From contig CM075981.1 of NCBI GenBank assembly GCA_038087875.1, positions 19,158,001 through 19,222,000 of the forward strand: 64,000 bases of DNA. The letters are read 5' to 3'. Each line of letters opens with the position of its first letter. The stretch's first letter is position 1. Positions 1 to 62,552 of the stretch are shown here, piece after piece. The notes beneath the pieces are model-generated. The model had not been told where the DNA came from. It saw only the letters and a list, made by a program, of their open reading frames with translations, and searched no databases. The translations under genes and the position numbers were made by a program. The DNA is from Malacoraja senta. Its lineage: Eukaryota.

Positions 1-284
1 TCTGTGATCCAGTGTGGGCGAGCACGCAGGCCGTTGACCGATGTGTCGGCATTTGTTGTACTTCCCCATCAAGCCCCGTGGTAGTTAAACCCACACCCCT
101 GGCAATGTGGCCGGAGTTGCCTATCGGAAGGGGCATCAGTGACCCAGAGTGGCGCGGCAGGGTTTGGAAACCCGCACTGTGATGTTTTTTTAAATCCAGA
201 GATTGGACTTTTAGACTTTAGGGATCCAGCGGGTAAACAGGCCCACCACATCCGCGCCCACATTTTTTAAAACAATTTTACCGA

Positions 285-443
285 GGCCAATTAACCTCCA
301 AACCTACAAGTATTGGAATGTGAGAGGAAACCGGAGCTCCCGGAGAAAACCCATGCGGTCATAGGGAGAACATACAAACATCACCCATAGTCAGGATAGA
401 ACCTGGGTCTCCGGCACTGAAAGACTCTAGCGCTGTGTCGCCC
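285..443 (-). mobile_element. tRNA-derived V-SINE-type SINE, partial
   Basis: Reverse complement of the gggcgac...cagcgc...gagacccaggttc...V-domain (ggttttctccgggagctccggtttcctc) sequence that recurs through the window. Confidence 0.75.
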
Positions 444-465
444 ATGTTATTCATTAACGAGTTAA

Positions 466-900
466 GGGCCTGTCCCACATGGGCATCATTTGCGCGACAT
501 ACTAAAAATTGGATGGCGCATGGTGACACGCGCATGGCGCGTGGTGAGGCGTGGTGGCGTATGCAGTGATGCGCGGTAACCCGCGGCGCCCCATTATTTT
601 GCAATGCTCAAAATCCTCACGCGCCACCTGCGTGACGTATCCCTTGTACATGTTGACGTACTGATGGCGTACGCTGACGTACTGACGGCGTACGTGTAGC
701 GAGTGGTGACGCATTATTACGCACAGTGATGCACAAACTGCCTATGCTCATTTATTATGCGTCACCGTGCGTCAATGTCCGTAACCATGCGCCGCCCGTA
801 CGCCGCCCGTACGCCGTCGGCGAGCCTTTTGCGCGTCATTTGAGCGCCGCACCACGAGACCACCCGGGTATAAAGCGAGCGTAGTTTTGAAAAATTTTCA
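466..900. mobile_element. CpG-rich non-autonomous DNA transposon (PIF/Harbinger-like MITE), one terminus visible
   Basis: Starts TAA|GGGCCTGTCCCAC, CpG-rich with short internal repeats (cgcccgtac x2). The matching right TIR was not found. Confidence 0.45.
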
Positions 901-1127
901 CTGGGAAAATCCTTGCCACGGTGATCGGACTAAGTACGAACGACATCACAAATGGGCTCCCAAAAGCAGCAGGGCCCTCAAGAGCACTTGGCGCGCAACT
1001 GTCGTACTGCTAGACAATTTTCGTGCGACAGTCACCACCAGCCTGTCGCGTAAATGACTCGCAATTGACGCCCAGTCCCTGTCTGTCCCAGCCTCTCGAT
1101 GCTGCCCTAACCCAAGAAGACCCCCAC

Positions 1128-1240
1128 TTAACTGGTCAGTCCACAGCAGAGGTAGGCGGTGCATCCCAAGGCAATGAACCACACGCACTGGAAGGCGATT
1201 GTCACGGCCATCCTAACTCGGGAGGACATGCACGAAGAGC
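1128..1240 (-). CDS. Gene A terminal coding exon: hydrophobic GPI-signal-like or tail-less TM segment (GSSCMSSRVRMAVTIAFQCVWFIALGCTAYLCCGLTS*)
   Basis: Strong acceptor ccctgtttctttctgttcacag| at 1241; phase 1 matches the C2 exon; about 26 largely hydrophobic residues, then TAA at 1130-1128. Confidence 0.72.
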
Positions 1241-1399
1241 CTGTGAACAGAAAGAAACAGGGAACTCACCGGCGTTCGTGCACAGAGTTGAGGATCGCTG
1301 TGCATCATGTGCGTAATTGTCATTACTCATGACAATCCGTGTTAATTTACGTGTGAGACAGAAAGAACGTCCTGTCTGGTTTTGAGGACGTGACCATCC

Positions 1400-3250
1400 A
1401 TGTGTGTTTGACCATTTGTGTGTCACGCTGTATGGTGTGTATGCAAGATCAGCCATGAATGAATGGTGTAGACTTGATGGGCCGAATGGCCTAATTCTGC
1501 TCCTCTAACTTCTGAACATGATACTGCTCTTTAACTGTTCACACCTGTCTATCATTGCATGTCTGAAACACTCAAGGTGTGTTGGTGCACGCGATTGTGT
1601 ATTCTGGCTGTTCATCTGTGACTGTCCAAGTGTGTATCTGTGTGCATACTGTTTGTGACTGTGTGTGCATTCATATGTGTCTATGATTGTCAGAGTGCGC
1701 ATTTGAACAACATGTATGTGTGTGTGAGTGACTGCCACAATGTCTGTGCATTTATGTTTTTGTGCATGTATGTACACAAAAGTAGCTGTATGTATATAAT
1801 TTTGAGCATATGTGTGTGTGTGTGTAAAATGATGTGGGTATGTTTGCAATTATTGGTGTTATGTTTGTGTGATTATGTTTGCTGTCAGTGTACTTATGTG
1901 TAAGTGATTGCCTTTTTTCACTGTCATCTGTGTGCACGACTAACTGATTGCATATTTACAGTGTCACTGTGTTTGATTGTATATGTATTTATGTTTTTTT
2001 CCTGTACTTTTTAATCTGTACGCTCTCATGGTATATGCAAGATGCTGGTGTGCGTAACAGCCTGTGACTTTCTGACTGTGTGACTGAGACTTTTTCCAAT
2101 GTTTTGGTGGCACTGTGTGGTCGAAAGAGAATGAAGGGCAGAAAGTATGCAAGTCAGTGACTGTATCTGTATGTGATTCTTTATATATATAACTGTATAC
2201 AAAGCATGTGCATGTGCATGCATGATTCTCAGTATTTGACTGTATGTGTATAACTATCTGTCTGTGTGTCTTACTCTGTGCTGTGACTATATAACTGTGA
2301 TTGTGAGTGAGACTTATGGTCGTGATTAGGTGTGCACAACCTTCTGTTTGTATGGGCCTCCTGAACATGTGCATGTCTGTATGTTTGACTGTTCATATGT
2401 ATATCTGCGACTAGATGTGTGAGATGTGTAATGGTCTGTGTGTGCTTAACTATGTATGAATGCAGTTAGTCATAGTCACACCACGTGGAAACAGGCCCTT
2501 CGGCTCTCATCTAAACTATTCCCACCTGCCTGTTTTTGGCATATCCCTACAAATCTACCCTATCCATGTACCTGTCTAAATGTTTGTTAAATGTTATGTA
2601 TAACTAAGCCTGGTGCGGTGCATACATTTCACTTTGTGTGTCAGAGAGAGATTCTGATGGTAGTATCTGTGTGTGATGGTGAGAATGTGATTTTTGGTGC
2701 AGCTGGCTGTGTCTGATTGTTCATCCGTGTGTCTGTGACTGTGTATGCAATTCTATGATTGTGCAGATAACTGTGTGTGTATGTGTTCATGAGATTGTAT
2801 TGATTTGTGTGTGTGAGGCGTTGTACCTCTTTGTATCTGTGTGTGTGTGTGTGGCTGTGTATCTGATTTCTATGCCTGTGTGTGTGTGGGAGAGAGACAG
2901 AAACTATGTATATGTATGCATGTCTATGTATGACAGACCATGTTTCTGTATGTGAGAGGCTGTGCATCCAACTTTGCAGATAACTTTACTGTGCAGTGTT
3001 ACAGGTATGTGTGACTGCTTATGTTTAACCGTGAGACGGTTTGTGCCAATGGTGTGTGATTTTCTCTGCACAGGACTGCTTTTGTGTGAGACTATGTGAA
3101 TATGTAAGTGCATAATTCTCGTGTCCCTATCTGCAACTAATTATGGGAGGTAGGTGCCTGTGTGCAACTGTACGTCGGTAATGGTGAACTTGTGACATGT
3201 TTGAGATTGTATTTGTGTAAATACATGAGTGTGTAAGTTTCAGTGGGAGC
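1400..3250. repeat. Long degenerate (TG)n-rich simple repeat in gene A intron 2
   Basis: About 1.8 kb dominated by tgtg/tgtatg/tgactg units; it produces the His/Thr- and Cys/Val-rich ORF artefacts. Confidence 0.9.
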
Positions 3251-3460
3251 AAGACTAGTTGGGTGAGATTCCTGCAGATATGTACACGACTATCTAGTGG
3301 ATGACCGTGTGATTGAGTGAGTGGTTCAATGCATATGCACGTATGTCCCTTTCCACTTCGACGACTGTGTGAGATTTGTGTCGGAACAGGAGATTACTGG
3401 GGTGCCGGGGGGAAGGGGAGACATAAAAAAAAGTCCCACCAGCTTTTTGCGTAAACTCGC

Positions 3461-3742
3461 CAATGAAGCTACAGGCTGGGGCCACGTCAACGGATAGGTC
3501 CTCTCGGGCTGCCTCCGAAAAGCATTTGTACACGGTGCTGTCGCTGTTGGGGTCAGGTGTGACAGTCAGCTGCCCGCCTCCGAACTCCATAAGGTGCCTG
3601 CTGTCGTCAGATATGTTGGTGCTACCTCGGCACCAGTGGAATTTCGACGCTTGCATCTGGAGAGAGCATGTCAACGCCAACTGACAGGGACTGCCCGAGG
3701 CGGAGAGTTTCTGAACCGTGTAGGCAATCTTTCCCGCGGAAC
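3461..3742 (-). CDS. Gene A exon 2: SLAM/CD2-type IgC2 domain (GSAGKIAYTVQKLSASGSPCQLALTCSLQMQASKFHWCRGSTNISDDSRHLMEFGGGQLTVTPDPNSDSTVYKCFSEAAREDLSVDVAPACSFI)
   Basis: Acceptor ctctctcctccccag|; open 282-nt phase 1-1 exon, the same length as gene B's C2 exon. Pattern C-x-L-x-L-T-C...W...Y-x-C...C includes the extra Cys pair typical of CD2/SLAM C2 domains; N-I-S sequon. Donor is TTG|GCGAGT (GC type); an in-frame GTGGGA lies 21 nt downstream. Confidence 0.85.
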
Positions 3743-4224
3743 CTGGGGAGGAGAGAGTGAGGTTAGAGCCCAGTCTGATATCTGATACACGGGGTCATCA
3801 ACACAAGGCCACACGACTTGACTGAACCGGGCCGTGACCTGCATCACGGGGGCAGCGAGTGCACGATCAGTTTAAAGGGCAGAACACCCTCCTGCTCCGA
3901 GGCAAAAGGCAGGAAACGTCCTGTAAATATTCCCTGCATACAGCATGGGGCAGTTCAGCGTGCGTCAGTGGGAGCATCCGTGTGCTGTGAGAGGGGGGTT
4001 CAGTTGGTGGGGAGGGTCGGCGACGGGGGAAGAGTTTCTGTGGGAGAGGGATTCGGTGTGTGGGGAGATTCGGTGATGGAGGGAAATGTCGATGGGCTCA
4101 GAGAGATTCAATGGGCGGAGAGAGTCTGTGATGGGAGAGAGTGTCTGCAGGCCGTGTGAGTGGTTTCAGCGGGCAGAGATGGAGTATCCGTGGGCTGTGG
4201 GAAATTCAGTTGATGGGAAAATTC

Positions 4225-4551
4225 ATGGACTGGTGATGACCACGAATCGCAGACTTCAAGCAGTCATTGCATGTAAAGGATATGCAGCAACATACTAAAC
4301 ACGACTACTTTCATTTACATGACATTGCTGTGTCCCAAACATTATGGTGCCCTGAAATGGGGACTATGTATAAACACAGCTGTAATTTCTACATGGTGAA
4401 TCCAAAATCTGTAAAAATGGCCTTTATTAAAATCTGACAATATGCACTTTAACCTCATGTGATTTTTTTCTATTACAAATCTCAAATTGTGGAGTACAGA
4501 GGCAAATAAATAAATGATAGGTCTTTGTCCCAAACATTATGGAGGGCACTG
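4225..4551 (-). mobile_element. Tc1/mariner terminal fragment (IR/DR-type TIR)
   Basis: Ends in gtcccaaacattatggagggcactg|TA, i.e. TA|CAGTG start on the minus strand. An inner direct repeat gtcccaaacattatgg lies at about 4332. Confidence 0.7.
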
Positions 4552-5029
4552 TAACCAAAAAGGAAGAAACTAAGAATGAACACAAGCGGATAGAAGCAGG
4601 AGGCGGCCACTCAAATAATCACACCAACATTACCCGTAATTCTACAAATGGAATGTTTACTGTATGCAGTAATTAATAAATACCATAAAATATATTGTCA
4701 CTATTATCAACAGCTCAGCAGCTTGAAAAATGCTTTATAAGATGTACGGGAGAATTAGTGTAACGTTGGATAAAGTTTACATATTTGGATATTGATGGAA
4801 TCACAAGATGTGGGGTTAGAGCCGGACAATGGCATTGAGGTAGGTCACCATTCCCCCCTCCCATTGCCCCTTCTTTACTGCCCCCCATCCCTCTGGCTGC
4901 CACCACCCTTCTTTCTGTGTCCTGCCAGCTGACTTCACCCTCTCTCTCTTTTTCCTTTTTCTCAGTCTTGTCACTTTCTGTCCTCCCACATTTCCCCTCT
5001 CTCCCTACTCCTCATCCTGCTTTTGCTGA

Positions 5030-5065
<36 letters not shown>

Positions 5066-5820
5066 CCTGTGGGTGTCAGAGGTCCACCTCACAGTTCACT
5101 GCACCTGCTACACACCCATTTAAAGCTTATTCTTTACAATGGAGACTCTAAGAAAGGAGAGAGATATGGTCCCTCACAGCCTTATTGGGCTGACCACCCC
5201 TTGACCCACTTCAATATCACCTCACCAGGTGCTAACCAATCCAACTCCTTCTTATCTGGCACCAATGTTCGCTTACGACCCCCCCCCCCCCCCGCATCCT
5301 CACTTCCTCAAACAGTTAGTATAGAAATGACATAAGTCTGAAGCAGCAGTGGTGGAGGAATGGGGTGAGAAAGCTGGTTGAGGTGCAGTGAGAGCCCTTG
5401 GGAGAATGTTGTGGCTGAAAAGGGGGAAAGGACCTTCGCCTGGACTGTACTGGGAATGAGGTTGACCCACAGCACTGATCACAGTGTATAAAGTTTACCC
5501 TCTGTGTCTCGGGGGATGCCAAGACAATGGGCAATATAGGGGAACAGGAATTCAAGAGCAACAGCAGATGCTCCGTTTGGCTCTCCCTCCCCATTACTAC
5601 ACCCCTCTGAACCATCCTCAGGAGCACCAGTCCCTCAGTCTATTATTCATTCCCCAGTGTTCTTTCCCACTCCCTTTTGCTATCACTCCCTCACTATTCC
5701 CTGTCTCATCCTGCTGGTTGTCCTCGCTCCCTGTCCCTCGCCCCTCTTGCCCATACGCTCACTTCTCCCTCCCTCTCTCACTCGCGCTTCCTCTGCCTTC
5801 CATTTCTCCACCCGACTCAC

Positions 5821-5878
5821 CAGTCCACATGGAGAAGAAGATGATGACTCCCAGTACAGCCTTGGGCAGGGTATCCAT
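5821..5878 (-). CDS. Gene A exon 1: signal peptide (MDTLPKAVLGVIIFFSMWT-G) of a CD2/SLAM-like IgSF protein
   Basis: ATG at 5878 on the minus strand, 19 codons plus 1 nt, hydrophobic core AVLGVIIFF, then a perfect phase-1 donor G|GTGAGT at 5820. Splices in frame to the Ig exon at 3742. Confidence 0.8.
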
Positions 5879-6002
5879 TGTTTAACAGCTACTGCGAAGA
5901 GGTCTGAGTGGCAAAGGCAGCTGGTGGCAAATATTCTGTGTGATCCCTGTGAGACAAGGTCATAGACTGGCTGCAGATAGAGAGGGAGAGGCTCAGAATG
6001 GT

Positions 6003-11855: not shown

Positions 11856-12194
11856 GTCAGATTCAGGGCCGGATTTACGTATAACTAGACAAGGCTTAAG
11901 CTTAGGGCCTCGAGACCTAGGGGGGCCTCGACCCGCTCCACCAAGATGTATAAAACTTTTGACACAGTGGCGTTGTTACAAAACCTACCATCAGTGGCGC
12001 TGTGCGATAGTGGCGTTGTTACAAAACGTACCATCGGTGATGCTGTTCTTGCGATTCCAGAGGCTTTGGTGGTGTGGGGGGGGTGATTAAAATGCGGGTG
12101 AGGTTCATATTCGTTGTGGAGAGGAATGTGCTCCAAAGATCCTTGGAACCTTGGAAGTGCAGGACAAAGCAAAAGGTATGTAGTTTATTTAACC

Positions 12195-51795: not shown

Positions 51796-52435
51796 TGTAT
51801 CAGATCACTCCTCAACCTCTGACATTTCAGAGAAAACAATTCAAGTTTGTTCAACCTCTCCTTATTGCTAATACCACCTAATCCAGGCATCATTCTGGCA
51901 AAACTCTTCTGCACCATTTCCAAGCCACCACATCTTTCTTGTAATGGGGCGACCAGAACTGCATACTCCAGATGCAACCTCACCAAAGTCGTATAAAGCT
52001 GCGACATGACTTCCTTGTTGCAGACAAAGTCAGGCCGACTCTCCCTAAATAACCAATTCCCTTCCATGGGATAAATCCAATCCTGAAATATCTTCTCCAA
52101 TAGATTCCTCACCACTGATATGAGGCTCAGCAACCTATAATTCCCTGGACTGTCTCTATCTCCCTCCTTAGACTAAGGAACAACATTGGCTACTGTCCAG
52201 TCCTCCGTGGATAGAGAGGTTGCAAAAAGCTTGGTCAAAGTCTATTCAATCTTCTCTATTGCTTTTTAAAAAATAACATAGGATAGCCATGGGAATTTAA
52301 CCATCTTACTCCTCTTCGAGAGTCTTAACACCACCTCCTTCTTGGCTCAAACTGCCCTTATATGTTAGTATTCTCCACACTATCCTCACTGTGCTCCGTA
52401 TTCTTATTGTTTATGAATACATAGGCAAAGTACTT

Positions 52436-54083
52436 GAAGGAAGACAAAAATGCTGGAGAAACTCGGCGGGTGAGGCAGCATCTATGAAGAGAAGGAATAG
52501 GCAACATTTTGGGTCGAGACCCTTCTTCAGACTGATGTCGGGGGAGGGGGAGGGGGGGGGGCAGGGAAAAGGAAACTGGGGCTGCATCTGCACCCAGAAT
52601 GAAGTGTTCAAGACCAGGGCATCGGAGATGTCCCCATTCTTTTGGGAACAGGGGTTCCCCTCTGCTATTATAGATGAGGCTCTCACCAGGATCTCCTCTA
52701 TATCCTGCAGCTCTGCTCTCACTCCCCATCCCCCTACTCATAACAAGGACAGAGTCCCCCTTGTCCTCACCTTCCACCCGACTAGCTGTCGTATACAACA
52801 TATAATCTCCCTGGTCTGGAACACCACATTCTGGGTGCAGATGCGGCATAGACGGAGGAATTGGGAGTCAAATTGGGAGTCGAGGATAGAGTCCTTACAG
52901 GAAGCAGGGTGGGAAGAAGTGTCATCCAGAGAGCCATGTGAGTCAGTGGGTTTGTAGTCCAGATAGCCGTGGAAATCAATGGGTTTCTACTACAAACCCA
53001 CCGACTCCCATGGTTCTCTGGACTACACTTCTTCCCACCCTGCTTCCTGTAAGAACTCTATCCCCTACTCCCAATTCCTCCATCTACGCCGCATCTGCAT
53101 CCAGAATGAGATGTTCCAGACCAGGGCATCAGAGATGTCCTCATTCTTTAGGGAACGGGGGTTCCCCTCTGACTATAGATGAGGCTCTCACCAGGGTCTC
53201 CTCTATATTCCGCTCTCACTCCACATCCCCTACTCATAACAAGGACAGAGTCTCCCTTGTCCTCACCTTCCACCCTACCATCCGTCGCATACAACATATA
53301 ATCTTCCGACATTTTTGCCACCTCCAACGGGATCCCACCACTGGCCACATCTTGTCATCTCCTTCCTTTTCTGCTTTCCGCAGAGACCGTTCCCTCCGTA
53401 ACTCCCTGGTCAATTTGTCCCTTCCCACCCAAACCATCTCCTCCCCTGATACTTTCCCTTGCAACCGCAGGAAATACTACACTTGTCGCTTTACCTCCCT
53501 CTTCAACTCCATCCTAGGGCCCAAACAGTCTTTCCAGATGAGGCAGAGGTTCACCTGCACCTCCTCTAACCTCATCTACTGCATCCGCTGTTCCAGGTGT
53601 CAACTTCTCTACATTGGTGAGACCAAGCGCAGGCTTGGCAATTGCTTCGCCCAACATCTCCGCTCAGTTCGCAATAACCAACCTGATCTCCTGGTTGCTC
53701 AGCACTTCAACTCCCCCTCCCGTTCCGAATCTGACCTTTCTGTCTTGGGCCTCCGCCATTGCCAGAGTGAGGCCCAGCGCAAATTGGTGGAACAGCACCT
53801 CATATTTTGCTTGTGTAGTTTACACGCCAGCGGTATGAAAATTGACCTCCAATTTCAGGTAGTCCTTGCTTTGTCCCTCCTTCTCCCCCTTCCCAACTCT
53901 CCCCCAAGCCTACTGTCTCCGCCTCTTCCTTTCCTTTTCCCCGCACTCCCCGACATCAGTCTGAAGAAGGGTCTCAACCCGAAATGTTGCCTATTCCTTC
54001 TCTCCATAGATGCTGTCTCACCCGCTGAGTTTCTCCAGCATTTTTGACTACCTTCGATTATTCCAGCATCTGCAGTTCTTTCT
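52436..54083 (+). mobile_element. Penelope-like element C with an inverted terminus and an internal inverted segment, inserted in an old minus-strand CR1 (about 51800-54290)
   Basis: 14-bp TSD TAGGCAAAGTACTT (52422-52435 and 54084-54097); GIY-YIG motif LIYCIRC/YIGETKR. Confidence 0.9.
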
Positions 54084-54369
54084 TAGGCAAAGTACTTAGT
54101 TAGTACTTCACCTACATCCTCTGACTCCAAGAACACTTTTCCTTCTTTACCCTTGAGTGGTCCTACCTTCTTCCTGGTTACCTTGTTGATTTAATTTACA
54201 TATAAAAAGCATTACAATTTTCTTCAACTCAACTTACGTCAGTTCTAATCACCTACTTGAGTTCTTTCCTACTTGCTTTATATTCCTCAATATCAAGATT
54301 GAATGAAATAGTCAGGGTGAGAGATCAGTTAGTTGCGCGTGTTCTTCGTTTGCGCAGTGTTGCGATACG

Positions 54370-54423
54370 TGCTTCCTCTGCTCATGGTGAGATCAGTTCC
54401 TGTTCCTTTACTTCCTTTTTCAG
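54370..54423 (+). promoter_or_regulatory. ETS-core (TTCC x4) cluster and/or polypyrimidine acceptor just upstream of gene B's ATG
   Basis: TTCC at 54373, 54397, 54403 and 54412 (AAAAAGGAAGT on the minus strand, PU.1/Spi-like). The same tract ends in ttttttcag (54423), so it could instead be a 3' splice site. Confidence 0.35.
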
Positions 54424-54466
54424 AAGATATCCGGGCCTTAGAAATCTAGTTCACTCAAACCTCAAG

Positions 54467-54533
54467 ATGTGGGAGTTCTCCTCGAGAAGTGCTGTCTGGC
54501 TGTTCTGTGCCTCCCTATTTGCCAAATGTTTGG
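54467..54533 (+). CDS. Gene B exon 1: signal peptide (MWEFSSRSAVWLFCASLFAKCL-A)
   Basis: AAGATGT start context, 22 codons plus 1 nt, hydrophobic AVWLFCASLF, phase-1 donor G|GTAATG; in frame with the V exon. Confidence 0.7.
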
Positions 54534-55574
54534 GTAATGTCAAGTTTTAGAGTTTGACTCTGGTTATAGAGCGGTGTAATATGTGTGAGCGATGTGAGGT
54601 TTACAGTGCTTGCAGAGGTCATTCATCATGGTCACATCCTCCGTTTGCTGGTTCACACCCTTGCATGTAAATTGCTTACTTGCTCTTTGTCTCTTCCATT
54701 CTTTCACACTTTTTCCCCTGTCCCTCTCTAGGTCTAGGTCTTGATTTCATTCCATCTCACTTAGTCTCTCTTTATATCTCACTTAATCCACAGACGTTCT
54801 ATATCTTTGTCCGTCCCTTTAAATATGTTTGTTGGTTCCTCAACACCTCAATCATCTCTGTAGGATTGACTGTCTTTCCCTTTGTTGCCCCCTCTCTCCC
54901 ACTCTCTCTTCCTCCTTGTATCCCTCTCTCTCCCTCATGGTCGCCCTCTGTATACATAGCTGTAGTTCAGCATCATTTTATGCTTCACATATTTCTGTTC
55001 ATCAGTTCTGATCACCTAACCACTTCCTGCCACCATTTGATAGAGTTCTTGACTCGAGTTAGCTTATCATATCCTGACAGACCTTTCATGCGGCGTCTAC
55101 GGAGGTATTTTTACAGACTTAAGAACGGCTTCTTCCCCATGGCTCTCATTTTCCTGAACCTTTAATGTCTTTCACACCCGCTTCCCTGAGGTGCTGTAAT
55201 GTACTCTTATATCTAATTCTACCTCAATTGGTTATTTTGTTATTGCTGTTTAGTATTTTTATACGTCTTCAGTTTACACAAAAATCTTTGCACAATTCTG
55301 CGGATTTGCATACATTATTGCGTTCGTTGTCGTTATTCTCTTTATTGTTTACTCTGTGAGCTTCATGCGAACTTGAAACTTCATTGCCCCTGTTGTATAT
55401 GGCATAAAATAATCTGAATCTGAATCTGAGGTTTCAAAGGCAGTGAGTTACTGCCTGGGTTCAGGGGCACAGTTGACCGCATTTCTCTTGCCTCAGAAAA
55501 ATCCATCACTTCTGGATGTCAGCTGCAAGGTGGGAGTTGCACTATACTGACCAATGAAACCAGACATGGAGGTC

Positions 55575-56940
55575 ACCAGTTGATTTATGACCAGCACACG
55601 GAGGAATCTTGGATCTGTCTTCACTAAGGAGGACACAAACAATCTTCCTGGTATAGTAGTGGCCAGAGGATCTGGGGTGACAGAGGAACTGAAGGAAATC
55701 CACATTAGGCAGGAAATGGTGTTGGATGGACTGATGGGACTGAAAGCTGATAAATTCCCAGGGCCTGATGGTCTGCATCCCAGGGTACTTAAGGAAGTGG
55801 CTCTAGAAATCATGGATGCATTGGTGATAATTTTCCAATGTTCTATAGACTCAGGATCAGTTCCTGTGGACTGGAGGGTAGCTAATGTTATCCCACGTTT
55901 TAAGAAAGGCGGGAGAGAGAAAACAAGGAATTATAGACCAATTAGCCTGACATCGGTGGTGGGGAAGATGCTGGAGTCAATTATAAAAGATGAGATAGCC
56001 GCACATTTGGATAGCAGTAACAGGATCGGTCCGAGTCAGCATGGACTTACAAAGGGGAAATCATGCTTGACTAAACTTCTGGAATTTTTTGAAGATGTAA
56101 CTCGGAAAATGGACAAGGGAGAGCCAGTGGATGTAGTGTACCTGGACTTTCACAAAGCATTTGATAAGGTCCCACATAGGAGATTAGTGGGCAAATTTAG
56201 GGCACATCGTATTGGGGGGTAGAGTGCTGACATGGATAGAGAAGTGGTTGGCAGACAGGAAACAAAGAGTAGGGATTAACGGGTCTCCTTCAGAATGGCA
56301 GGCAGTGACTAGTGGGGTACCGCAAGGCTCGGTGATGGGACCGCAGTTATTTACAATATACATCAATGATTTGGATGAGGGATTCAAAGTAACATTAGCA
56401 AATTTGCAGATGACACAAAGCTGGGTGGCAGTTTGAACTGTGAGGAGGATGCTATGAGAATGCAGGGTGACTTTGACATGTTGGGGGAGTGGGCAGATGC
56501 ATGGCAGATGAAGTTTAATGCGGATAAATGTGAGGTTATCCACTTTGGTAGTAAAAACAGAAAGGCAGATTACTATCTAAATGGCGTCAAGTTGGGAAAA
56601 GGGGAAGTACAACGGGATCTGGGGGTCCTTGTACATCAATCTATGAAAGTAAGCATGCAGTGAAGAAAGCGAATTGCATGTTGGCCTTTATAACAAGAGG
56701 AATCAAATATAGGAGCAAAGAGGTCCTTCTGAAGTTGTACAGAGCCCTAGTGAGACCAGACCTGGAGTATTGTGTGCAGTTTTGGTCCCCTAATTTGAGG
56801 AAGGTCGTTCTTGCTATTGAGGGAGTGCAGCGTAGGTTTACAAGGTTAATTCCCGGGATGGCGGGACTGTCATATGCTGAGAGAATGGAGCAGCTGGGCT
56901 TGTACACTCTGGAGTTTAGAAGGATGAGAGGGAATCTCAA
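55575..56940 (+). mobile_element. CR1 LINE in gene B intron 1; a further minus-strand CR1 fragment at about 57060-57385
   Basis: [42 protein letters not shown] motifs. Confidence 0.92.
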
Positions 56941-58180
56941 CGCTGCCGAGGGAATTAACAAAGAATGACCTGGCATGAGGGGACCGCCATGAGGGAGGGG
57001 AAAGAACAATGGGACCCGGGCGTGGGGAACCGCTGTGAGGGACATCCCCTCTTGAAATAAATACTAGCATTGCATTTGATTTCTTTACTACCGATTCGAC
57101 TTACAGATTAACTTTTTGGGAATCATGCACCAGCACTCCCAAGTCCCTTTGCACCTCCGATTTCTGGATTCTCTCCTAATTTAGAAAATAGTCTATGCCT
57201 TTATTCCTGCTACCAAAATGCATGACTCCTCACTTTGCTACACTATATTCCATCTGCCACTTCTCTGCCCACTCTCCCTACCTATCCAAGTCCTTCTGCA
57301 GAGTCCCTGCTTTCTCTACACTACCTGCCCCTCCACCAATTTTCGTATCATCCACATGCATGGCCACAAAGTCTTCAATCCTCACATACAAATCAAAGCT
57401 GAATGGTAACTGTCACCTCCAGTTGCTGCCAGTTTGTTGGCAGACTTTCAATTACTAGAGGAGGTGGGCGTTGCTTTATGTTTTCTCTGCAACATACTTG
57501 ACCTCTCACTGACTTGTTTGGATCCCATAACATTTCTCACATTTGCGCATTGAGGAATACATGGAGCAGAATACCTGCTGGCAAGCACATATTTCACAGG
57601 TCAACAGGAAGAAAGCCTCAATAACATTACATTGCAGAATGACACCTATGTCTGGCCCATACAGAACCAAATATGACAACCTTTCCCTCTGATTACACAA
57701 GAATGGCTGCAGGCAAAGGGAATGCAACAGCAGGACATGGGGCATCCTTGATGCATTCCTGTCTCAAAGTGAAGGGCGCTGTCCTCCCACAACCTGAAGA
57801 TGTACAGATTTGTACGTTCATTGGTCTCTGTAAAATTGCTCCTAATGTTCAGGGAGTGGATGAGCGAGATTGTATAGAAATCGTGTGAACGAATGATCAA
57901 TGGATGGCATGAACTCGTTGGGCCGAAGGGTCTGTTTCCATGCTGTCAAAATAAGTGAAGGGTGCTTTCAGGAGCCCGTTTACCATCACCAACAGAATCT
58001 TCACCCTGTTCCCTCCGTGGGCTCACTGTCTGATGCAGGAATTATGGGCCGGGTATCTCACGGAGCCAGGAGCCAGACGATGGGCCGCATGGCCTGCTCC
58101 TGTGCTCTGTGATTCTCCCAGCTCCGATTCCTCCTCCAGTCACTGAGCTGTCCTGCTGACTGCCTCTCTTGTCTCCTCAG

Positions 58181-58498
58181 CTGGGACTGGGTCCGCCGCT
58201 GGCACCGTGACCGGAGCTCGGGGACACACGATCTCCTTACCTGCTGGGATCACAGTCCCACCGGACATTACGGAAGTTGTGTGGAGGCGGGTATTGCCCA
58301 GAATCAAGATAGCGGAACACTCGAATGGGAAGATTGAATACTATAACGTCAATTACACGGGACGGGTAACTCTTCACCCCAGGAACTTCAGTCTGGAAAT
58401 CCGTGATCTACGGGGAGAGGACGCTGGTGAATATGAGGTGACTTTTGGAACAAGTTCAGGAGTTGAAACTCAGGCAAGAGTCCGACTGGAGGTGTACG
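58181..58498 (+). CDS. Gene B exon 2: Cys-less IgV domain of the CD2/SLAM family (GTGSAAGTVTGARGHTISLP...VVWRR...GRVTLHPRNFSLEIRDLRGEDAGEYEVTF...VRLEVY)
   Basis: Acceptor tctcttgtctcctcag|, donor G|GTGAGT; 318 nt, phase 1-1. Has the V-set Trp, R-V-x-L, S-L-x-I-x-x-L and D-x-G-x-Y motifs but no B/F-strand cysteines, as in CD2/CD48/CD58/SLAM V domains. Confidence 0.93.
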
Positions 58499-59169
58499 GT
58501 GAGTGAGACTGCCACAGAGGTCCCGGGATTCACCAGCTCCTGAACCCGTATAATTAATTGGTGAGGGCAGATCCTGTGCGTTCCCCAGTTTACTGAACCC
58601 CACTGACTGCCAGTGTGTGGAGTGGGGGTCACGGCCGTTGTGCGACTGGGGCAGTGCCAGGCTGGGGGACAGACCCACCACATCCCCGGAGACTGGGCCA
58701 GGGGCCGCCAAGGAACAAACCGTCAAAAGGGGAACCTCGTAGCTCCGAGGCTGGAGGAGCTGAGCACATGGGGAGGGAGGAATGGATAGGGTAGGAGGGG
58801 TAGTTTAGATGGGCCGAACAGTCTGTATCTCTGAGACCTAGTTAAACAGACCCCACTGTATCCACAGGTCAAAGGCCTTGTATGTCATGTTCAGGGATCC
58901 CAGTTGTCCCATCTGTTTCCCACAGTTCTGCCTGTTCATTCCCAAGACTGGGGAGTGAATTCAGGAAGGTTTTTATTCCTCAGCCTCCATGCTCTGCATT
59001 GCTGAGCGTTGCCCTGTGTATTTATTCCACTGAATATGGTCCCAATGAGTGAGGCAGTACATGTACACAACAACACACTCACACCCAGCAATATCGTTCC
59101 TATCTCACTCTTACAAGAGTGAAATAGGAATATAACCTTTCAAAACACATAAATAAGTGTTTTGAAAGG

Positions 59170-60045
59170 TTAGATCGCATGGGATCCAAAGAGCGATAGC
59201 TGAATGGATAGCAAATTGACTCCATGGAAGAAGCAGAGGGTGATGGTGGAAGGTTGCTTCTTGGACTGGAGGCCTGTGACAAGTGGTGTGCCTCAGAGTT
59301 CGGTGCTGAGCCCGTTACTGTTTGTCATCTACATCAATGATTTGGATAATAACAAACAAGAGGGCAAGATTAGCAAGTTTGCTGATGATACACAAGTGAG
59401 TGGTTTTGCAAATAGTGAAGATGGTTATGAAAGATTGCAGCTGGATCTGAATCGATTGGCCAAGTGGGCGGAGGAATGGTTGATGGAATTTAATACAGAG
59501 AAGTGCGAGGTGTTGCATTTTGGGATGTCTAACAAGGGCAGGACCTACACAGTAAATGGTAGGCCTCTGGGTAGTGTTGTAGAGCAGAGGGATCTAGGAG
59601 TGCAGGTGCATAGTTCCTTGAAGGTCGAGTCACAGGTAGATAATTTGGTCAAAAAGACTTTTGGCACATTGGCCTTCATCAGTCAGAGTATTGAGTATAG
59701 AAGTTGGGAGGTCATGTTGCAGATGCAGTTGTATAAGATGTTGGTGACACCGCATTTAGAATATTGTGTTCAGTTCTGGGCACCATGTTACAGGAAAGGT
59801 ATTGTCGAGCTTGAAAGGGTTCAGAAAAGATTTACGAGGATGTTGCCTGGACTAGAGAGTGAGCTGTAGGGAGAGGTTGAGTAGGCTGGGTCTCTATTCC
59901 ATGGAGTGCAGGAGGATGAGGAGAGATCTTTTCGAGATGTACAAAATCATGAGAGGAATAGATCGGGTAGATGCACAGAGTCTCTTGCCCAGGGTAGGGG
60001 AATCGAGGACCAGAGGACTTAGGTTCAAGGTGAAGGGGACAAAGT
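59170..60045 (+). mobile_element. CR1 LINE fragment in gene B intron 2
   Basis: [31 protein letters not shown] motifs. Confidence 0.9.
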
Positions 60046-62270
60046 TACAAACGTTTTCAATATAGTCCCGATGGTCCCTTGTTGCCCTTGGTGCCCCCAC
60101 ACTCCCCCACCCCCCATGCCGGGTCCCTCTTTGTTCGGAATCAGGATTGGAATCTGAATCCATTGCACACATTCCCGCCTTCCCTTCAGAACAAAGTTCT
60201 ATCTGTCTTGGCCTTTTACCGACTTGGCCTCCACAGCTCTCCGAGGGAGAATTCCACTGATTTCAAATCCTCAGAGAGGAGGAATTTCTCCATTTCTCCA
60301 TCTGACAAGGACAACCCCTTTTCCTGAATCTCTGCCCCTTAGCCTGAATCTCTACCCCTTGTCCACGATCCCACTCCTCCTGTCTCTGTTTCTTGTCCTC
60401 CCCCACTGGGGATTGTTTCGCTCAGTCCCCTCTGCCCATACCGATCAATACGTTAAAAATGTCCCTCAGGTTACCTCATCCTGCTCGGGTCGACAGGGAA
60501 TGACCATGGCCTCTTTTGACCACCAGAGCACGGAAGCCCTTCATCCCTAAAATTTTTGCTGTACATATCTCTTGCACTTTGACATCCTTTCCAACATGCA
60601 AAGCCTTGAGCTGGCACAGCTCTCCAGCTGTCGACAAACCAGTGGTTTCTGAAGATTCATCATGATTTCTATGCTCTTGAACTTTGTGCCTGTGTTTAAT
60701 GTGATGCACATATTCTCACAGCACCTTCAGCAGTAGGACACAGTGATTCAAGTAAGCAGCTAACCAAACCATCTCAATGGCAATTATGGGTGGACAATAA
60801 CAGGTGGCCTTGCCAGCAATACCCAGATCCCCAAAAAATCAATTTAAACAAAATAATATTATTCTCGGCGTTATGTTCCATCTGTCACCAACCAGATGGC
60901 ACATAATTGAAATCAATCTCTATCTTCCTCATAGTTCATTGAACCGCCAAGTTTTTCTCATTTGGAAAACAATGATCCAACTGCTGAACTTGAACAACTC
61001 ACCTCTCCAATCACTGTATACGTTCACCATGTATCTGTACACTTTAAATGGCTCGATTGTAATACAGTAAATGGCTCGATTGTAACCAGTTCGGACGGAG
61101 ATACGATACGGATTAACAAATCGCATCTCCATCGAGGTAAGAGATTTAAAAAAGTTTCCCCCAACCCCCACCCCCCCCCCCCCACACCCTGCATAAAACA
61201 AAGCTAAAGAACACTAAAACACACATTTAACACGTACTAAAAAACAACAAAGAACGAAAAGGACAAGACAGATTGTTGATGAGGCAGCCATTGGGGCGCT
61301 ATCCGGTGGTTAACCTAAACTAAACTAAACTTTCTCTTTCTGTTTCTAACACTAGATTAATTTTCTTTACACATTGTACCCCCCTAATCTGTGAGCTGAT
61401 TGAGGCTCTGTGTGGGAGAGGGTGTGTCACCCAGGATCTGCATGGTGCCGGATTCACTCTGGAACATAGCATGCTATCCCAGTCTGGGTCTGTGCCCATC
61501 ACAGTCCAAGGGCAACTGCTGTTGGCAGGTTCAGGGCTGGTTTGGGCTGGGTCACACTTAGGTGTGTAAGAGGCATGCGGACCACTCACAGGAGTGACAA
61601 AATACATGGAACTGATGAGAATTCCCAAGATACAGAGCCATAAAACCTGCGCAGACTGGAGATTTTGCAGACATCTTCAACCTCTCATTACTGAAGTCTG
61701 AAGTTCCCACATGCTTTAAGAGGGCATCAATAACACCAATTCATGCGCTGTTCAGCACAAGAAGAGTGGGGCAACATGCCTCAATGACTATCGATCTGTG
61801 GCACTAACGTCCGTGGCGATGAAGTGCTTTGAGAGATTGGTTATGGTGCATATCAACTCCTACCTCAACAAGAACCTCAACCCATTACAATATGCACACT
61901 GCAAATTTTTCATGTTTGTTATATTATTTACAGATTACTATGTTTACATATTCTGTTGTGCTCCTGAAAGTAATAATTTCATTGTTGGACATATGATAAT
62001 ATCACACTTTTGACTCGACTGTAAACAGGACACAGTGGAGAGTTTGTGGATGAGTGCGGGCAGTGGTCGGGAAGGGAGCGCAGCAAGTGTGGACTTCCTC
62101 CAGCAACAACTATCTGAACTGAAGGGGGAGGGAAGAGATAAACTGGTGGGTGGAAATGAACTGGCATTGGCTTAAAGTTCACTCGTGACTGTTGAAGACA
62201 GGATGTTGGGTATCGAGGGGTCCACAAGTATCTCCTTTACTCATCTTTCTTCTCTCTGCCCCAACCTCAG

Positions 62271-62552
62271 AGCCCGTGGCAGGAACACAGATCAAGGCTG
62301 AGAACATCACCGAGATCTGCAACCTCTCCCTGACTTGCTTCGTGACCTCCGGCGGCCCCATCAACTTCACGTGGTGGAGGGAAGCTTTGGGAAATGACAG
62401 CACCCACCACCTCGAGGGACACGGAAAGACAATACAGGTTTATCACACAGCAGAGGTCGGGGGCACTGTGTATACGTGTGAGGCCAGTAACCCGGTCAGT
62501 AAGGGCACAGCACAGATCCGGCTGAGGGATATCTGTAAACAGTCCACATTTG
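62271..62552 (+). CDS. Gene B exon 3: SLAM/CD2-type IgC2 domain (EPVAGTQIKAENITEICNLSLTC...FTWW...YTCEASNPVS...ICKQSTF)
   Basis: Acceptor ctctctgccccaacctcag|, donor G|GTGAGT; 282 nt, phase 1-1. CNLSLTC, YTCEASNPVS and a terminal Cys are the canonical SLAM-family C2 signature; several N-x-S/T sequons. Confidence 0.95.

Follow-up and report, generated by a model that had tools for sequence, protein, structure and literature searches.

A V-less, single-C2 immunoglobulin gene of the skate Malacoraja senta as a probable member of an uncharacterized shark-and-ray family with tyrosine-rich tails

The stretch of 64,000 nucleotides (nt) of the Malacoraja senta genome analysed here, called the window in the following (assembly GCA_038087875.1, contig CM075981.1, positions 19,158,001 to 19,222,000 of the forward strand), contains on its minus strand, between positions 5878 and 1128, a small three-exon gene that is probably the skate member of an uncharacterized family of shark and ray proteins, which consist of a leader and one C2-type immunoglobulin (Ig) domain without any V domain and which carry a cytoplasmic tail in the family at large. 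Exon 1 (5821..5878, minus strand) encodes the signal peptide; the Kozak context of its ATG is good (A at -3, G at +4), and its 3' end, in phase 1, is set by the donor CTG/GTGAGT, the slash marking the exon border. It is followed by intron 1 (3743..5820, minus strand, 2078 nt, GT..AG), which opens with the donor GGACTG/GTGAGT, closes with a good AG acceptor and contains simple repeats and, at ~4229-4553, an interspersed repeat of very high copy number. Exon 2 (3440..3742, minus strand, 303 nt, phase 1 to phase 1) encodes the single C2-type Ig domain and the start of a stalk. Intron 2 (1241..3439, minus strand, 2199 nt, GT..AG) also has a good acceptor, ttctgttcacag/GC, and the acceptors of both introns are preceded by pyrimidine tracts. 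Finally, exon 3 (1132..1240, minus strand, 109 nt up to a boundary conserved in the family, phase 1 to phase 2) encodes the stalk with a cysteine and a transmembrane segment (MAVTIAFQCVWFIALGCTAYLCC).

The first-pass annotation of this DNA had joined segments of 58, 282 and 113 nt (5878-5821, 3742-3461 and 1240-1128) into a minus-strand open reading frame (ORF) of 453 nt and 150 codons. This ORF is indeed open, and the hydrophobic C-terminal end described for its product is real, as exon 3 encodes the transmembrane segment. The donor that had been chosen for exon 2, at 3461/3460, is a GC site (TTG/GCGAGT) lying 21 nt too early. It was replaced by the GT donor at 3440/3439 (GCTG/GTGGGA), which leaves the phase unchanged, on the basis of tblastn homology and of an RNA contig from a relative. 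The in-frame tblastn homology to Mobula and Hypanus proteins runs seven codons past the GC site, to position 3438 (window ...FIGEFTQKAG; rays ...FVDTIVTKAG and ...FTDPTVTKTG). For the read evidence, four public sequencing runs were aligned to positions 1-6000 of the window: X1, a near-identical DNA run, X2, DNA of a relative, and X3 and X4, which are RNA-type runs of related organisms. In X4, contig 25 (422 nt, depth 5.4) aligned to exactly 3439-3740. Since the homology continues past the GC site and this contig covers the same extended segment, exon 2 comprises 3742-3440 and the ORF 157 codons. The 150-amino-acid product proposed before was thereby right apart from seven residues by which it fell short of the corrected 157; it represents the first three exons of the gene plan of the family, and the copy ends early. 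The GC donor at 3461/3460 may occasionally be used, given that X3 contig 17 from a relative ends at 3465.

All three exons match ray proteins in a collinear manner in tblastn. Exon 2 matches the product of Hypanus LOC132395789 (E 1.4e-25), exon 1 is 61% identical over 18 amino acids to the leaders of Mobula P0001 and Hypanus P0037, and exon 3 is 45% identical over 31 amino acids. Judged from this homology, the three exons are to be regarded as real, well beyond chance. Moreover, the public runs show how the exons behave in transcripts. The DNA runs X1 and X2 cover exons and introns alike, and the RNA-type runs X3 and X4 have a depth of zero over the unique parts of the introns. Next to the segment in exon 2, X4 shows rows of depth 5.4 over ~1163-1240, and the bin 5801-6000 has a depth of 0.97, which corresponds to 36 nt x 5.4 / 200 and equals the 36-nt flank of the X4 contig. 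X4 contig 25 thus appears to be a single intron-less contig across exons 1, 2 and 3, in which the leader is spliced to the Ig exon without a V exon and the GT donor of exon 2 is used. X3 contig 16 aligned to 1131-1241 and continues with at most 47 nt unlike the window, while the X2 DNA contig tracks the window as far as 1092; therefore, at least one relative splices on at 1131. Transcription and splicing of these exons are thereby seen in two relatives.

The homologues were collected by an exhaustive HMMER search with the Ig exon as query against 1.84 billion representative proteins, in which four single-Ig proteins of 224-275 amino acids were the only strong single-domain matches. They derive from Mobula birostris, Narcine bancroftii, Heterodontus francisci and Scyliorhinus canicula (LOC119971552) and are all annotated as 'uncharacterized' in RefSeq. 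In the two that have a complete N-terminus the match starts at residue 22, directly after the signal peptide; the N-terminal part of the remaining two, P0007 and P0013, is shorter. Hypanus sabinus LOC132395789, a protein of S. torazame and seven paralogues of Mustelus asterias were then recovered by a profile search, which brings the family to 13 'uncharacterized' RefSeq proteins from seven species of sharks and rays. No member outside the elasmobranchs was found in the HMMER and profile searches, a search for short homologues of the Ig exon (55-175 amino acids) returned none, and a full-text literature search yielded no paper describing the family, which is known in databases solely in the form of unnamed predictions. 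The RefSeq proteins have in common with the window gene a homologous leader, the single Ig domain, which is 29-49% identical, a stalk cysteine, a similar membrane segment and the exon order, and from the leader through the '...TS' that closes the membrane exon the 157-amino-acid product and the ray proteins are collinear. The window copy differs from most of its relatives in two respects: its membrane segment has a threonine (VTI) in place of the lysine (VKI), and it stops at the exon boundary where they continue into a long tyrosine-rich tail. The V-T-I triplet is also present in contigs of three relatives, so that V-K-I of the family is found neither there nor in the window. The shark Mustelus asterias by itself has at least seven V-less paralogues (P0044-P0050).

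The absence of a V domain, already noticed in the first-pass annotation, holds at the level of the gene as well as of the family. Queries with the V domain of a shark SLAMF5-like protein and with the V exon of a SLAMF5-like gene farther along the window, here called gene B, gave no SLAM V-domain match in intron 1; they match in the window only at 58207-58497/58506, i.e., in gene B itself (E 6e-20 for the shark V domain), and no significant match indicating a V remnant was seen below position 12000, including in and around intron 1. Moreover, the leader joins the Ig domain directly in the 13 homologues and apparently also in the contig of the relative. Because no homologue has a V domain between leader and C2 domain, the V-less state is older than the split of sharks and rays and not a recent deletion. 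The arrangement of an N-terminal V domain and a membrane-proximal C2 domain, which is the hallmark of the CD2/SLAM family, is accordingly not what the window gene has.

Regarding the origin of the Ig domain, exon 2 shows the pattern Cys19-x5-Cys25 ... Cys73-x16-Cys90 together with one NIS glycosylation sequon. All four cysteines align with those of the Heptranchias SLAMF5-like C2 domain, in agreement with the earlier description as a SLAM-type C2 with an extra cysteine pair, and the same Cys-x5-Cys ... Cys-x16-18-Cys pattern occurs in gene B and in C2 alignments. Shark SLAMF5-like proteins share with the window domain the positions of the second disulfide and a ...DS.H... stretch; the identity to SLAM C2 domains amounts to only ~23-27%. 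Scored per domain, the highest matches beyond the family's own members are C2 domains of two Heptranchias proteins, one Ly-9-like (25 bits) and one SLAMF5-like (22 bits), closely followed by a teleost CEACAM5-like domain (21.6 bits). Pfam gives only sub-threshold matches on the Ig exon, to Ig_3 (19.5 bits, below the cut-off) and I-set. The AlphaFold2 model is an Ig sandwich of seven strands (predicted local distance difference test score 77.6), and Foldseek searches against PDB and Swiss-Prot models return the generic Ig fold (ZAG alpha3, CD3 epsilon, CD48 and myomesin), with E values above ~1e-3 that do not discriminate. The C2 domain of rodent CD48 is among the top fold matches, the rat protein having the longest coverage (residues 4-97). 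Because of the cysteine alignment, the domain scores and the presence of gene B ~48 kb away, derivation of the domain from a SLAM C2 is favoured and seems rather likely, short of proof. Among the proteins met in these searches, two named 'HEPACAM family member 2-like', P0011 (Hypanus sabinus) and P0029 (Rhinoraja longicauda), contain SLAM-type C2 repeats with the SLAM C2 signature GICNLTLTC...NDS.H...YKCEARNP, and this automatic RefSeq name is apparently a misnomer.

The part of the gene that needs most care is the end of exon 3. Most homologues have a cytoplasmic tail of 110-200 residues beyond the membrane segment, in which a membrane-proximal EEGIYSxL/V is conserved in the full-length members. 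In nine of the 13 members one or two pairs resembling the immunoreceptor tyrosine-based activation motif (ITAM; YxxL-x7/8-YxxL) are present, many tails end with VTYSAxAEEV, and the Pfam ITAM model PF02189 scores above its cut-off in Mobula (25.4 compared with 22.2 bits). The immunoreceptor tyrosine-based switch motif (ITSM; TxYxxV/I) was found in the tail of none of the 13 homologues examined, and the window copy has no tail. Exon boundaries in the relatives were deduced from differences between isoforms (Mustelus P0045 and P0046) and from the ray sequence '...KTS/QK'. Judged by the Mustelus isoforms (…QQSS-KNEKK… and …QQSR-EEGIY…), the membrane exon ends after 'AG' in phase 2, which corresponds exactly to ACC AG in the window. 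At this position the window reads CAG/TTAAGT and not CAG/GTAAGT, i.e., the splice-donor position of the family (1126..1131, minus strand) is occupied by TTAAGT in place of GTAAGT. Reading through the boundary gives AGT TAA, so that the stop codon (1130-1128) follows one codon past the splice point of the family. One base upstream a GT is present (A/GTTAAGT), which has the form of a shifted-register donor as described by Tan et al. (2016; PMC4856993) and whose use would shift the frame. No tail-like coding sequence was found in 1-1131 by tblastn and by a search of the remaining ~1.1 kb. Tail exons, if there are any, would lie beyond the start of the window, because family genes span 15-73 kb in other genomes.

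At position 1225 the window has G (serine codon) and all four runs have C (cysteine codon), including the near-identical X1, and the cysteine lost there corresponds in the alignment to the stalk cysteine conserved in the ray proteins; the difference is either an allele or an assembly error. Given that departure, an allele or an error could also account for the T at 1131. As it is read here, the copy is predicted to encode at most a tail-less form of 157 amino acids, unless base 1131 is such an allele or error, and the skate copy may lack a tail, may be broken or may owe its stop to one mis-assembled base. The earlier statement that the gene appears intact holds for the Ig exon, which keeps all 12 family-invariant residues, and is made doubtful for the gene by the change from GT to TT at the conserved donor. 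A purpose-built decoy or modulator is not a good description of the gene, as the family reads as a signalling receptor whose tails are ITAM-like in nine of 13 members, and a complete tail-less decoy by design is probably not what the gene encodes.

Taken as a skate member of the tailed family, the gene can be placed in a plausible mechanism. The family product would be a type I membrane protein in which the signal peptide is followed by one SLAM-type C2 domain, a short cysteine-containing stalk and a single transmembrane segment. The most likely mechanism would be that of an activating-type immunoreceptor or signalling chain, in which contact with a ligand or partner is made by the C2 ectodomain, probably in cis or within a dimer held together by a disulfide at the stalk cysteine, and in which the tyrosine pairs of the tail, once phosphorylated, would recruit tandem-SH2 kinases. 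CD2/SLAM receptors are defined by a ligand-binding V domain and by ITSM signalling through SAP adaptors. In contrast, the window gene and its relatives have no V domain, the ITSM is absent and the tails of the relatives are ITAM-like. A conserved V-less and ITAM-like relative of the CD2/SLAM receptors would represent a different use of this scaffold in the oldest jawed vertebrates and would bear on the origin of ITAM chains and of paired receptors. For the window itself the value is modest, namely the correct model of an unannotated skate gene and a question of one base that decides on the tail.

Several results weigh against this assignment. The tail exons were not seen, as the window ends 1127 nt downstream of the stop codon and holds none, and the membrane lysine conserved in sharks and rays is missing from the window copy. 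No annotated skate protein of the family was found in the HMMER, profile and short-homologue searches. RNA of the species itself was not found either; both RNA-type runs are from relatives and are represented by assembled contigs, and the exon-1 piece of the X4 contig is not a listed piece and follows from the depth arithmetic. Furthermore, exon 3 compared with the X2 contig shows 10 differences in seven codons, all of them amino-acid-changing. With respect to the Ig domain, PDB sequence searches favour generic I-set domains and rank NCAM2, myomesin and contactin above SLAMF6 (E 0.12), and hhalign scores are equal for the SLAM, CEACAM5-like and 'HEPACAM2-like' C2 sets (59.8, 59.8 and 59.4).

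The divergence of exon 3 is not shared to the same degree by its surroundings. The adjoining 187 nt of intron 2 (1241-1427) differ from X2 at five positions, so that the differences are denser in exon 3 (1128-1240); the comparison is a small sample, in which X2 may moreover be a paralogue. The pattern would fit relaxed constraint or diversifying change.

Among the alternatives, it is possible but not likely that the skate product is a functional, tail-less C2-only surface protein of 157 amino acids, anchored in the membrane or by glycosylphosphatidylinositol (GPI) like CD48, and that it serves as a ligand, a decoy or a modulator in cis; in this case, donor loss would be a change fixed under selection. 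The ORF is open over three exons with all family-invariant Ig residues kept, the stop coincides exactly with the end of the exon, which spares the product an aberrant peptide, and the C-terminus, with small residues, a polar spacer and a hydrophobic end, may resemble a GPI signal. Of the 16 differences between the X2 DNA contig and the window, 15 lie elsewhere, so that the T at 1131 is probably shared by the two. Shortening of the tail also recurs in the family, as three Mustelus paralogues end before the distal ITAM-like pair. However, the X3 transcript departs from the window past 1131, showing that at least one skate-like relative splices on, and the whole interpretation depends on one base in an assembly that is also off all four runs at 1225, where the stalk cysteine becomes serine.

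The same substitution can be read in the opposite sense, as the G-to-T change that killed the donor of a decaying or allelic null copy of the tailed receptor, whose message would be truncated or prone to nonsense-mediated decay and without function. The TT at a conserved donor position, the serine found in the window only at the conserved stalk cysteine together with the loss of the membrane lysine, the solely non-synonymous differences in exon 3 and the failure of the protein searches to return an annotated skate orthologue are all in line with decay. In contrast, a null copy would not lead one to expect an Ig exon that is fully intact in every invariant residue, good splice sites at introns 1 and 2, or the transcription and splicing of the exons in two relatives, and we consider this reading unlikely.

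About equally unlikely is an origin of the Ig domain in a CEACAM-type or other C2 lineage, by which the neighbourhood of SLAM genes would be coincidental. The equal hhalign score of 59.8 was obtained with C2 domains of teleost and lamprey CEACAM5-like proteins, CEACAM1 is among the first PDB sequence matches, where CEA is also listed, and the ITSM is missing from the family. Some CEACAM members carry ITAM-like tails (PMC13278318), and CEACAM20 was returned by a protein-atlas feature search, which found functional look-alikes only (allergin-1, CEACAM20, Kaposi's sarcoma-associated herpesvirus K1 and FCRL5). However, the CEACAM5-like C2 consensus is without the outer cysteine pair, i.e., the first and the last cysteine of the window domain, and this extra pair aligns exactly with the SLAM C2. 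Moreover, the best single-domain scores belong to the C2 domains of the shark SLAM family, with the teleost CEACAM5-like domain behind them, the gene is located in a SLAM cluster, and the hallmark of the CEACAM family, an N-terminal V-like domain with a single-disulfide C2, is not found in the window gene.

The least probable of these alternatives, and a decidedly unlikely one, is that the family is a dedicated CD3/CD79-like ITAM chain built on a lone SLAM-type C2, of which skates made a tail-less partner or decoy, pairing with receptors of the SLAM cluster via the C2 domain, the stalk cysteine or the membrane lysine; if true, this would give SLAM-cluster receptors of sharks and rays an ITAM route that bony vertebrates lack. 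CD3 epsilon, gamma and delta, CD79a/b, NFAM1, CEACAM3 and CEACAM20 have a similar layout of a small Ig domain, a stalk cysteine, a charged membrane residue and an ITAM-like tail, and CD3 epsilon is among the fold matches (template modelling score ~0.53-0.55). The resemblance to these single-Ig ITAM chains is one of working plan only, as no sequence relationship was detected, and the membrane charge of the V-less family is basic (lysine) and not acidic.

Coming back to the preferred reading, a V-less member of the tailed shark-and-ray family with a favoured SLAM origin, the genomic neighbourhood is in agreement with it. The location in a SLAM/CD2 gene cluster, which had been proposed before, was borne out by gene B, a clear SLAMF5-like gene at 58207..62545 on the plus strand, ~48 kb off; it and the candidate gene lie on opposite strands in divergent orientation. 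Its V exon (~58207-58506, plus strand) and its C2 exon (~62243-62545, plus strand) were placed by homology, and it is 45-48% identical to Heptranchias SLAMF5-like and Ly-9-like proteins (E 1e-20 to 1e-27). In Hypanus, a KCNJ-type neighbour stands beside the family gene, which we take to be reminiscent of human 1q23. A weak leader-like match for the region of gene B was seen at 54467-54544. Reverse-transcriptase-like ORFs are present in 52000-60000, e.g., at 55587-56222 and 59204-59869 (plus strand), and retroelement copies therefore lie between the candidate gene and gene B.

Finally, much of the sequence in and around the candidate gene is repetitive. Most of intron 2 consists of a long low-complexity tract at ~1600-3300 that is CA-rich and G-poor on the gene (minus) strand. 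Extremely high-copy repeats are located downstream of the gene (201-600) and in intron 1 (4229-4553), both reaching a depth 10^4-10^5 times that of unique sequence in all four runs. In intron 2, the halves of a high-copy repeat at 1468-1504 and 2485-2595 both show very deep coverage, and many contigs connect 1504 straight to ~2484, so that the repeat is apparently divided here by an insert of ~980 nt.

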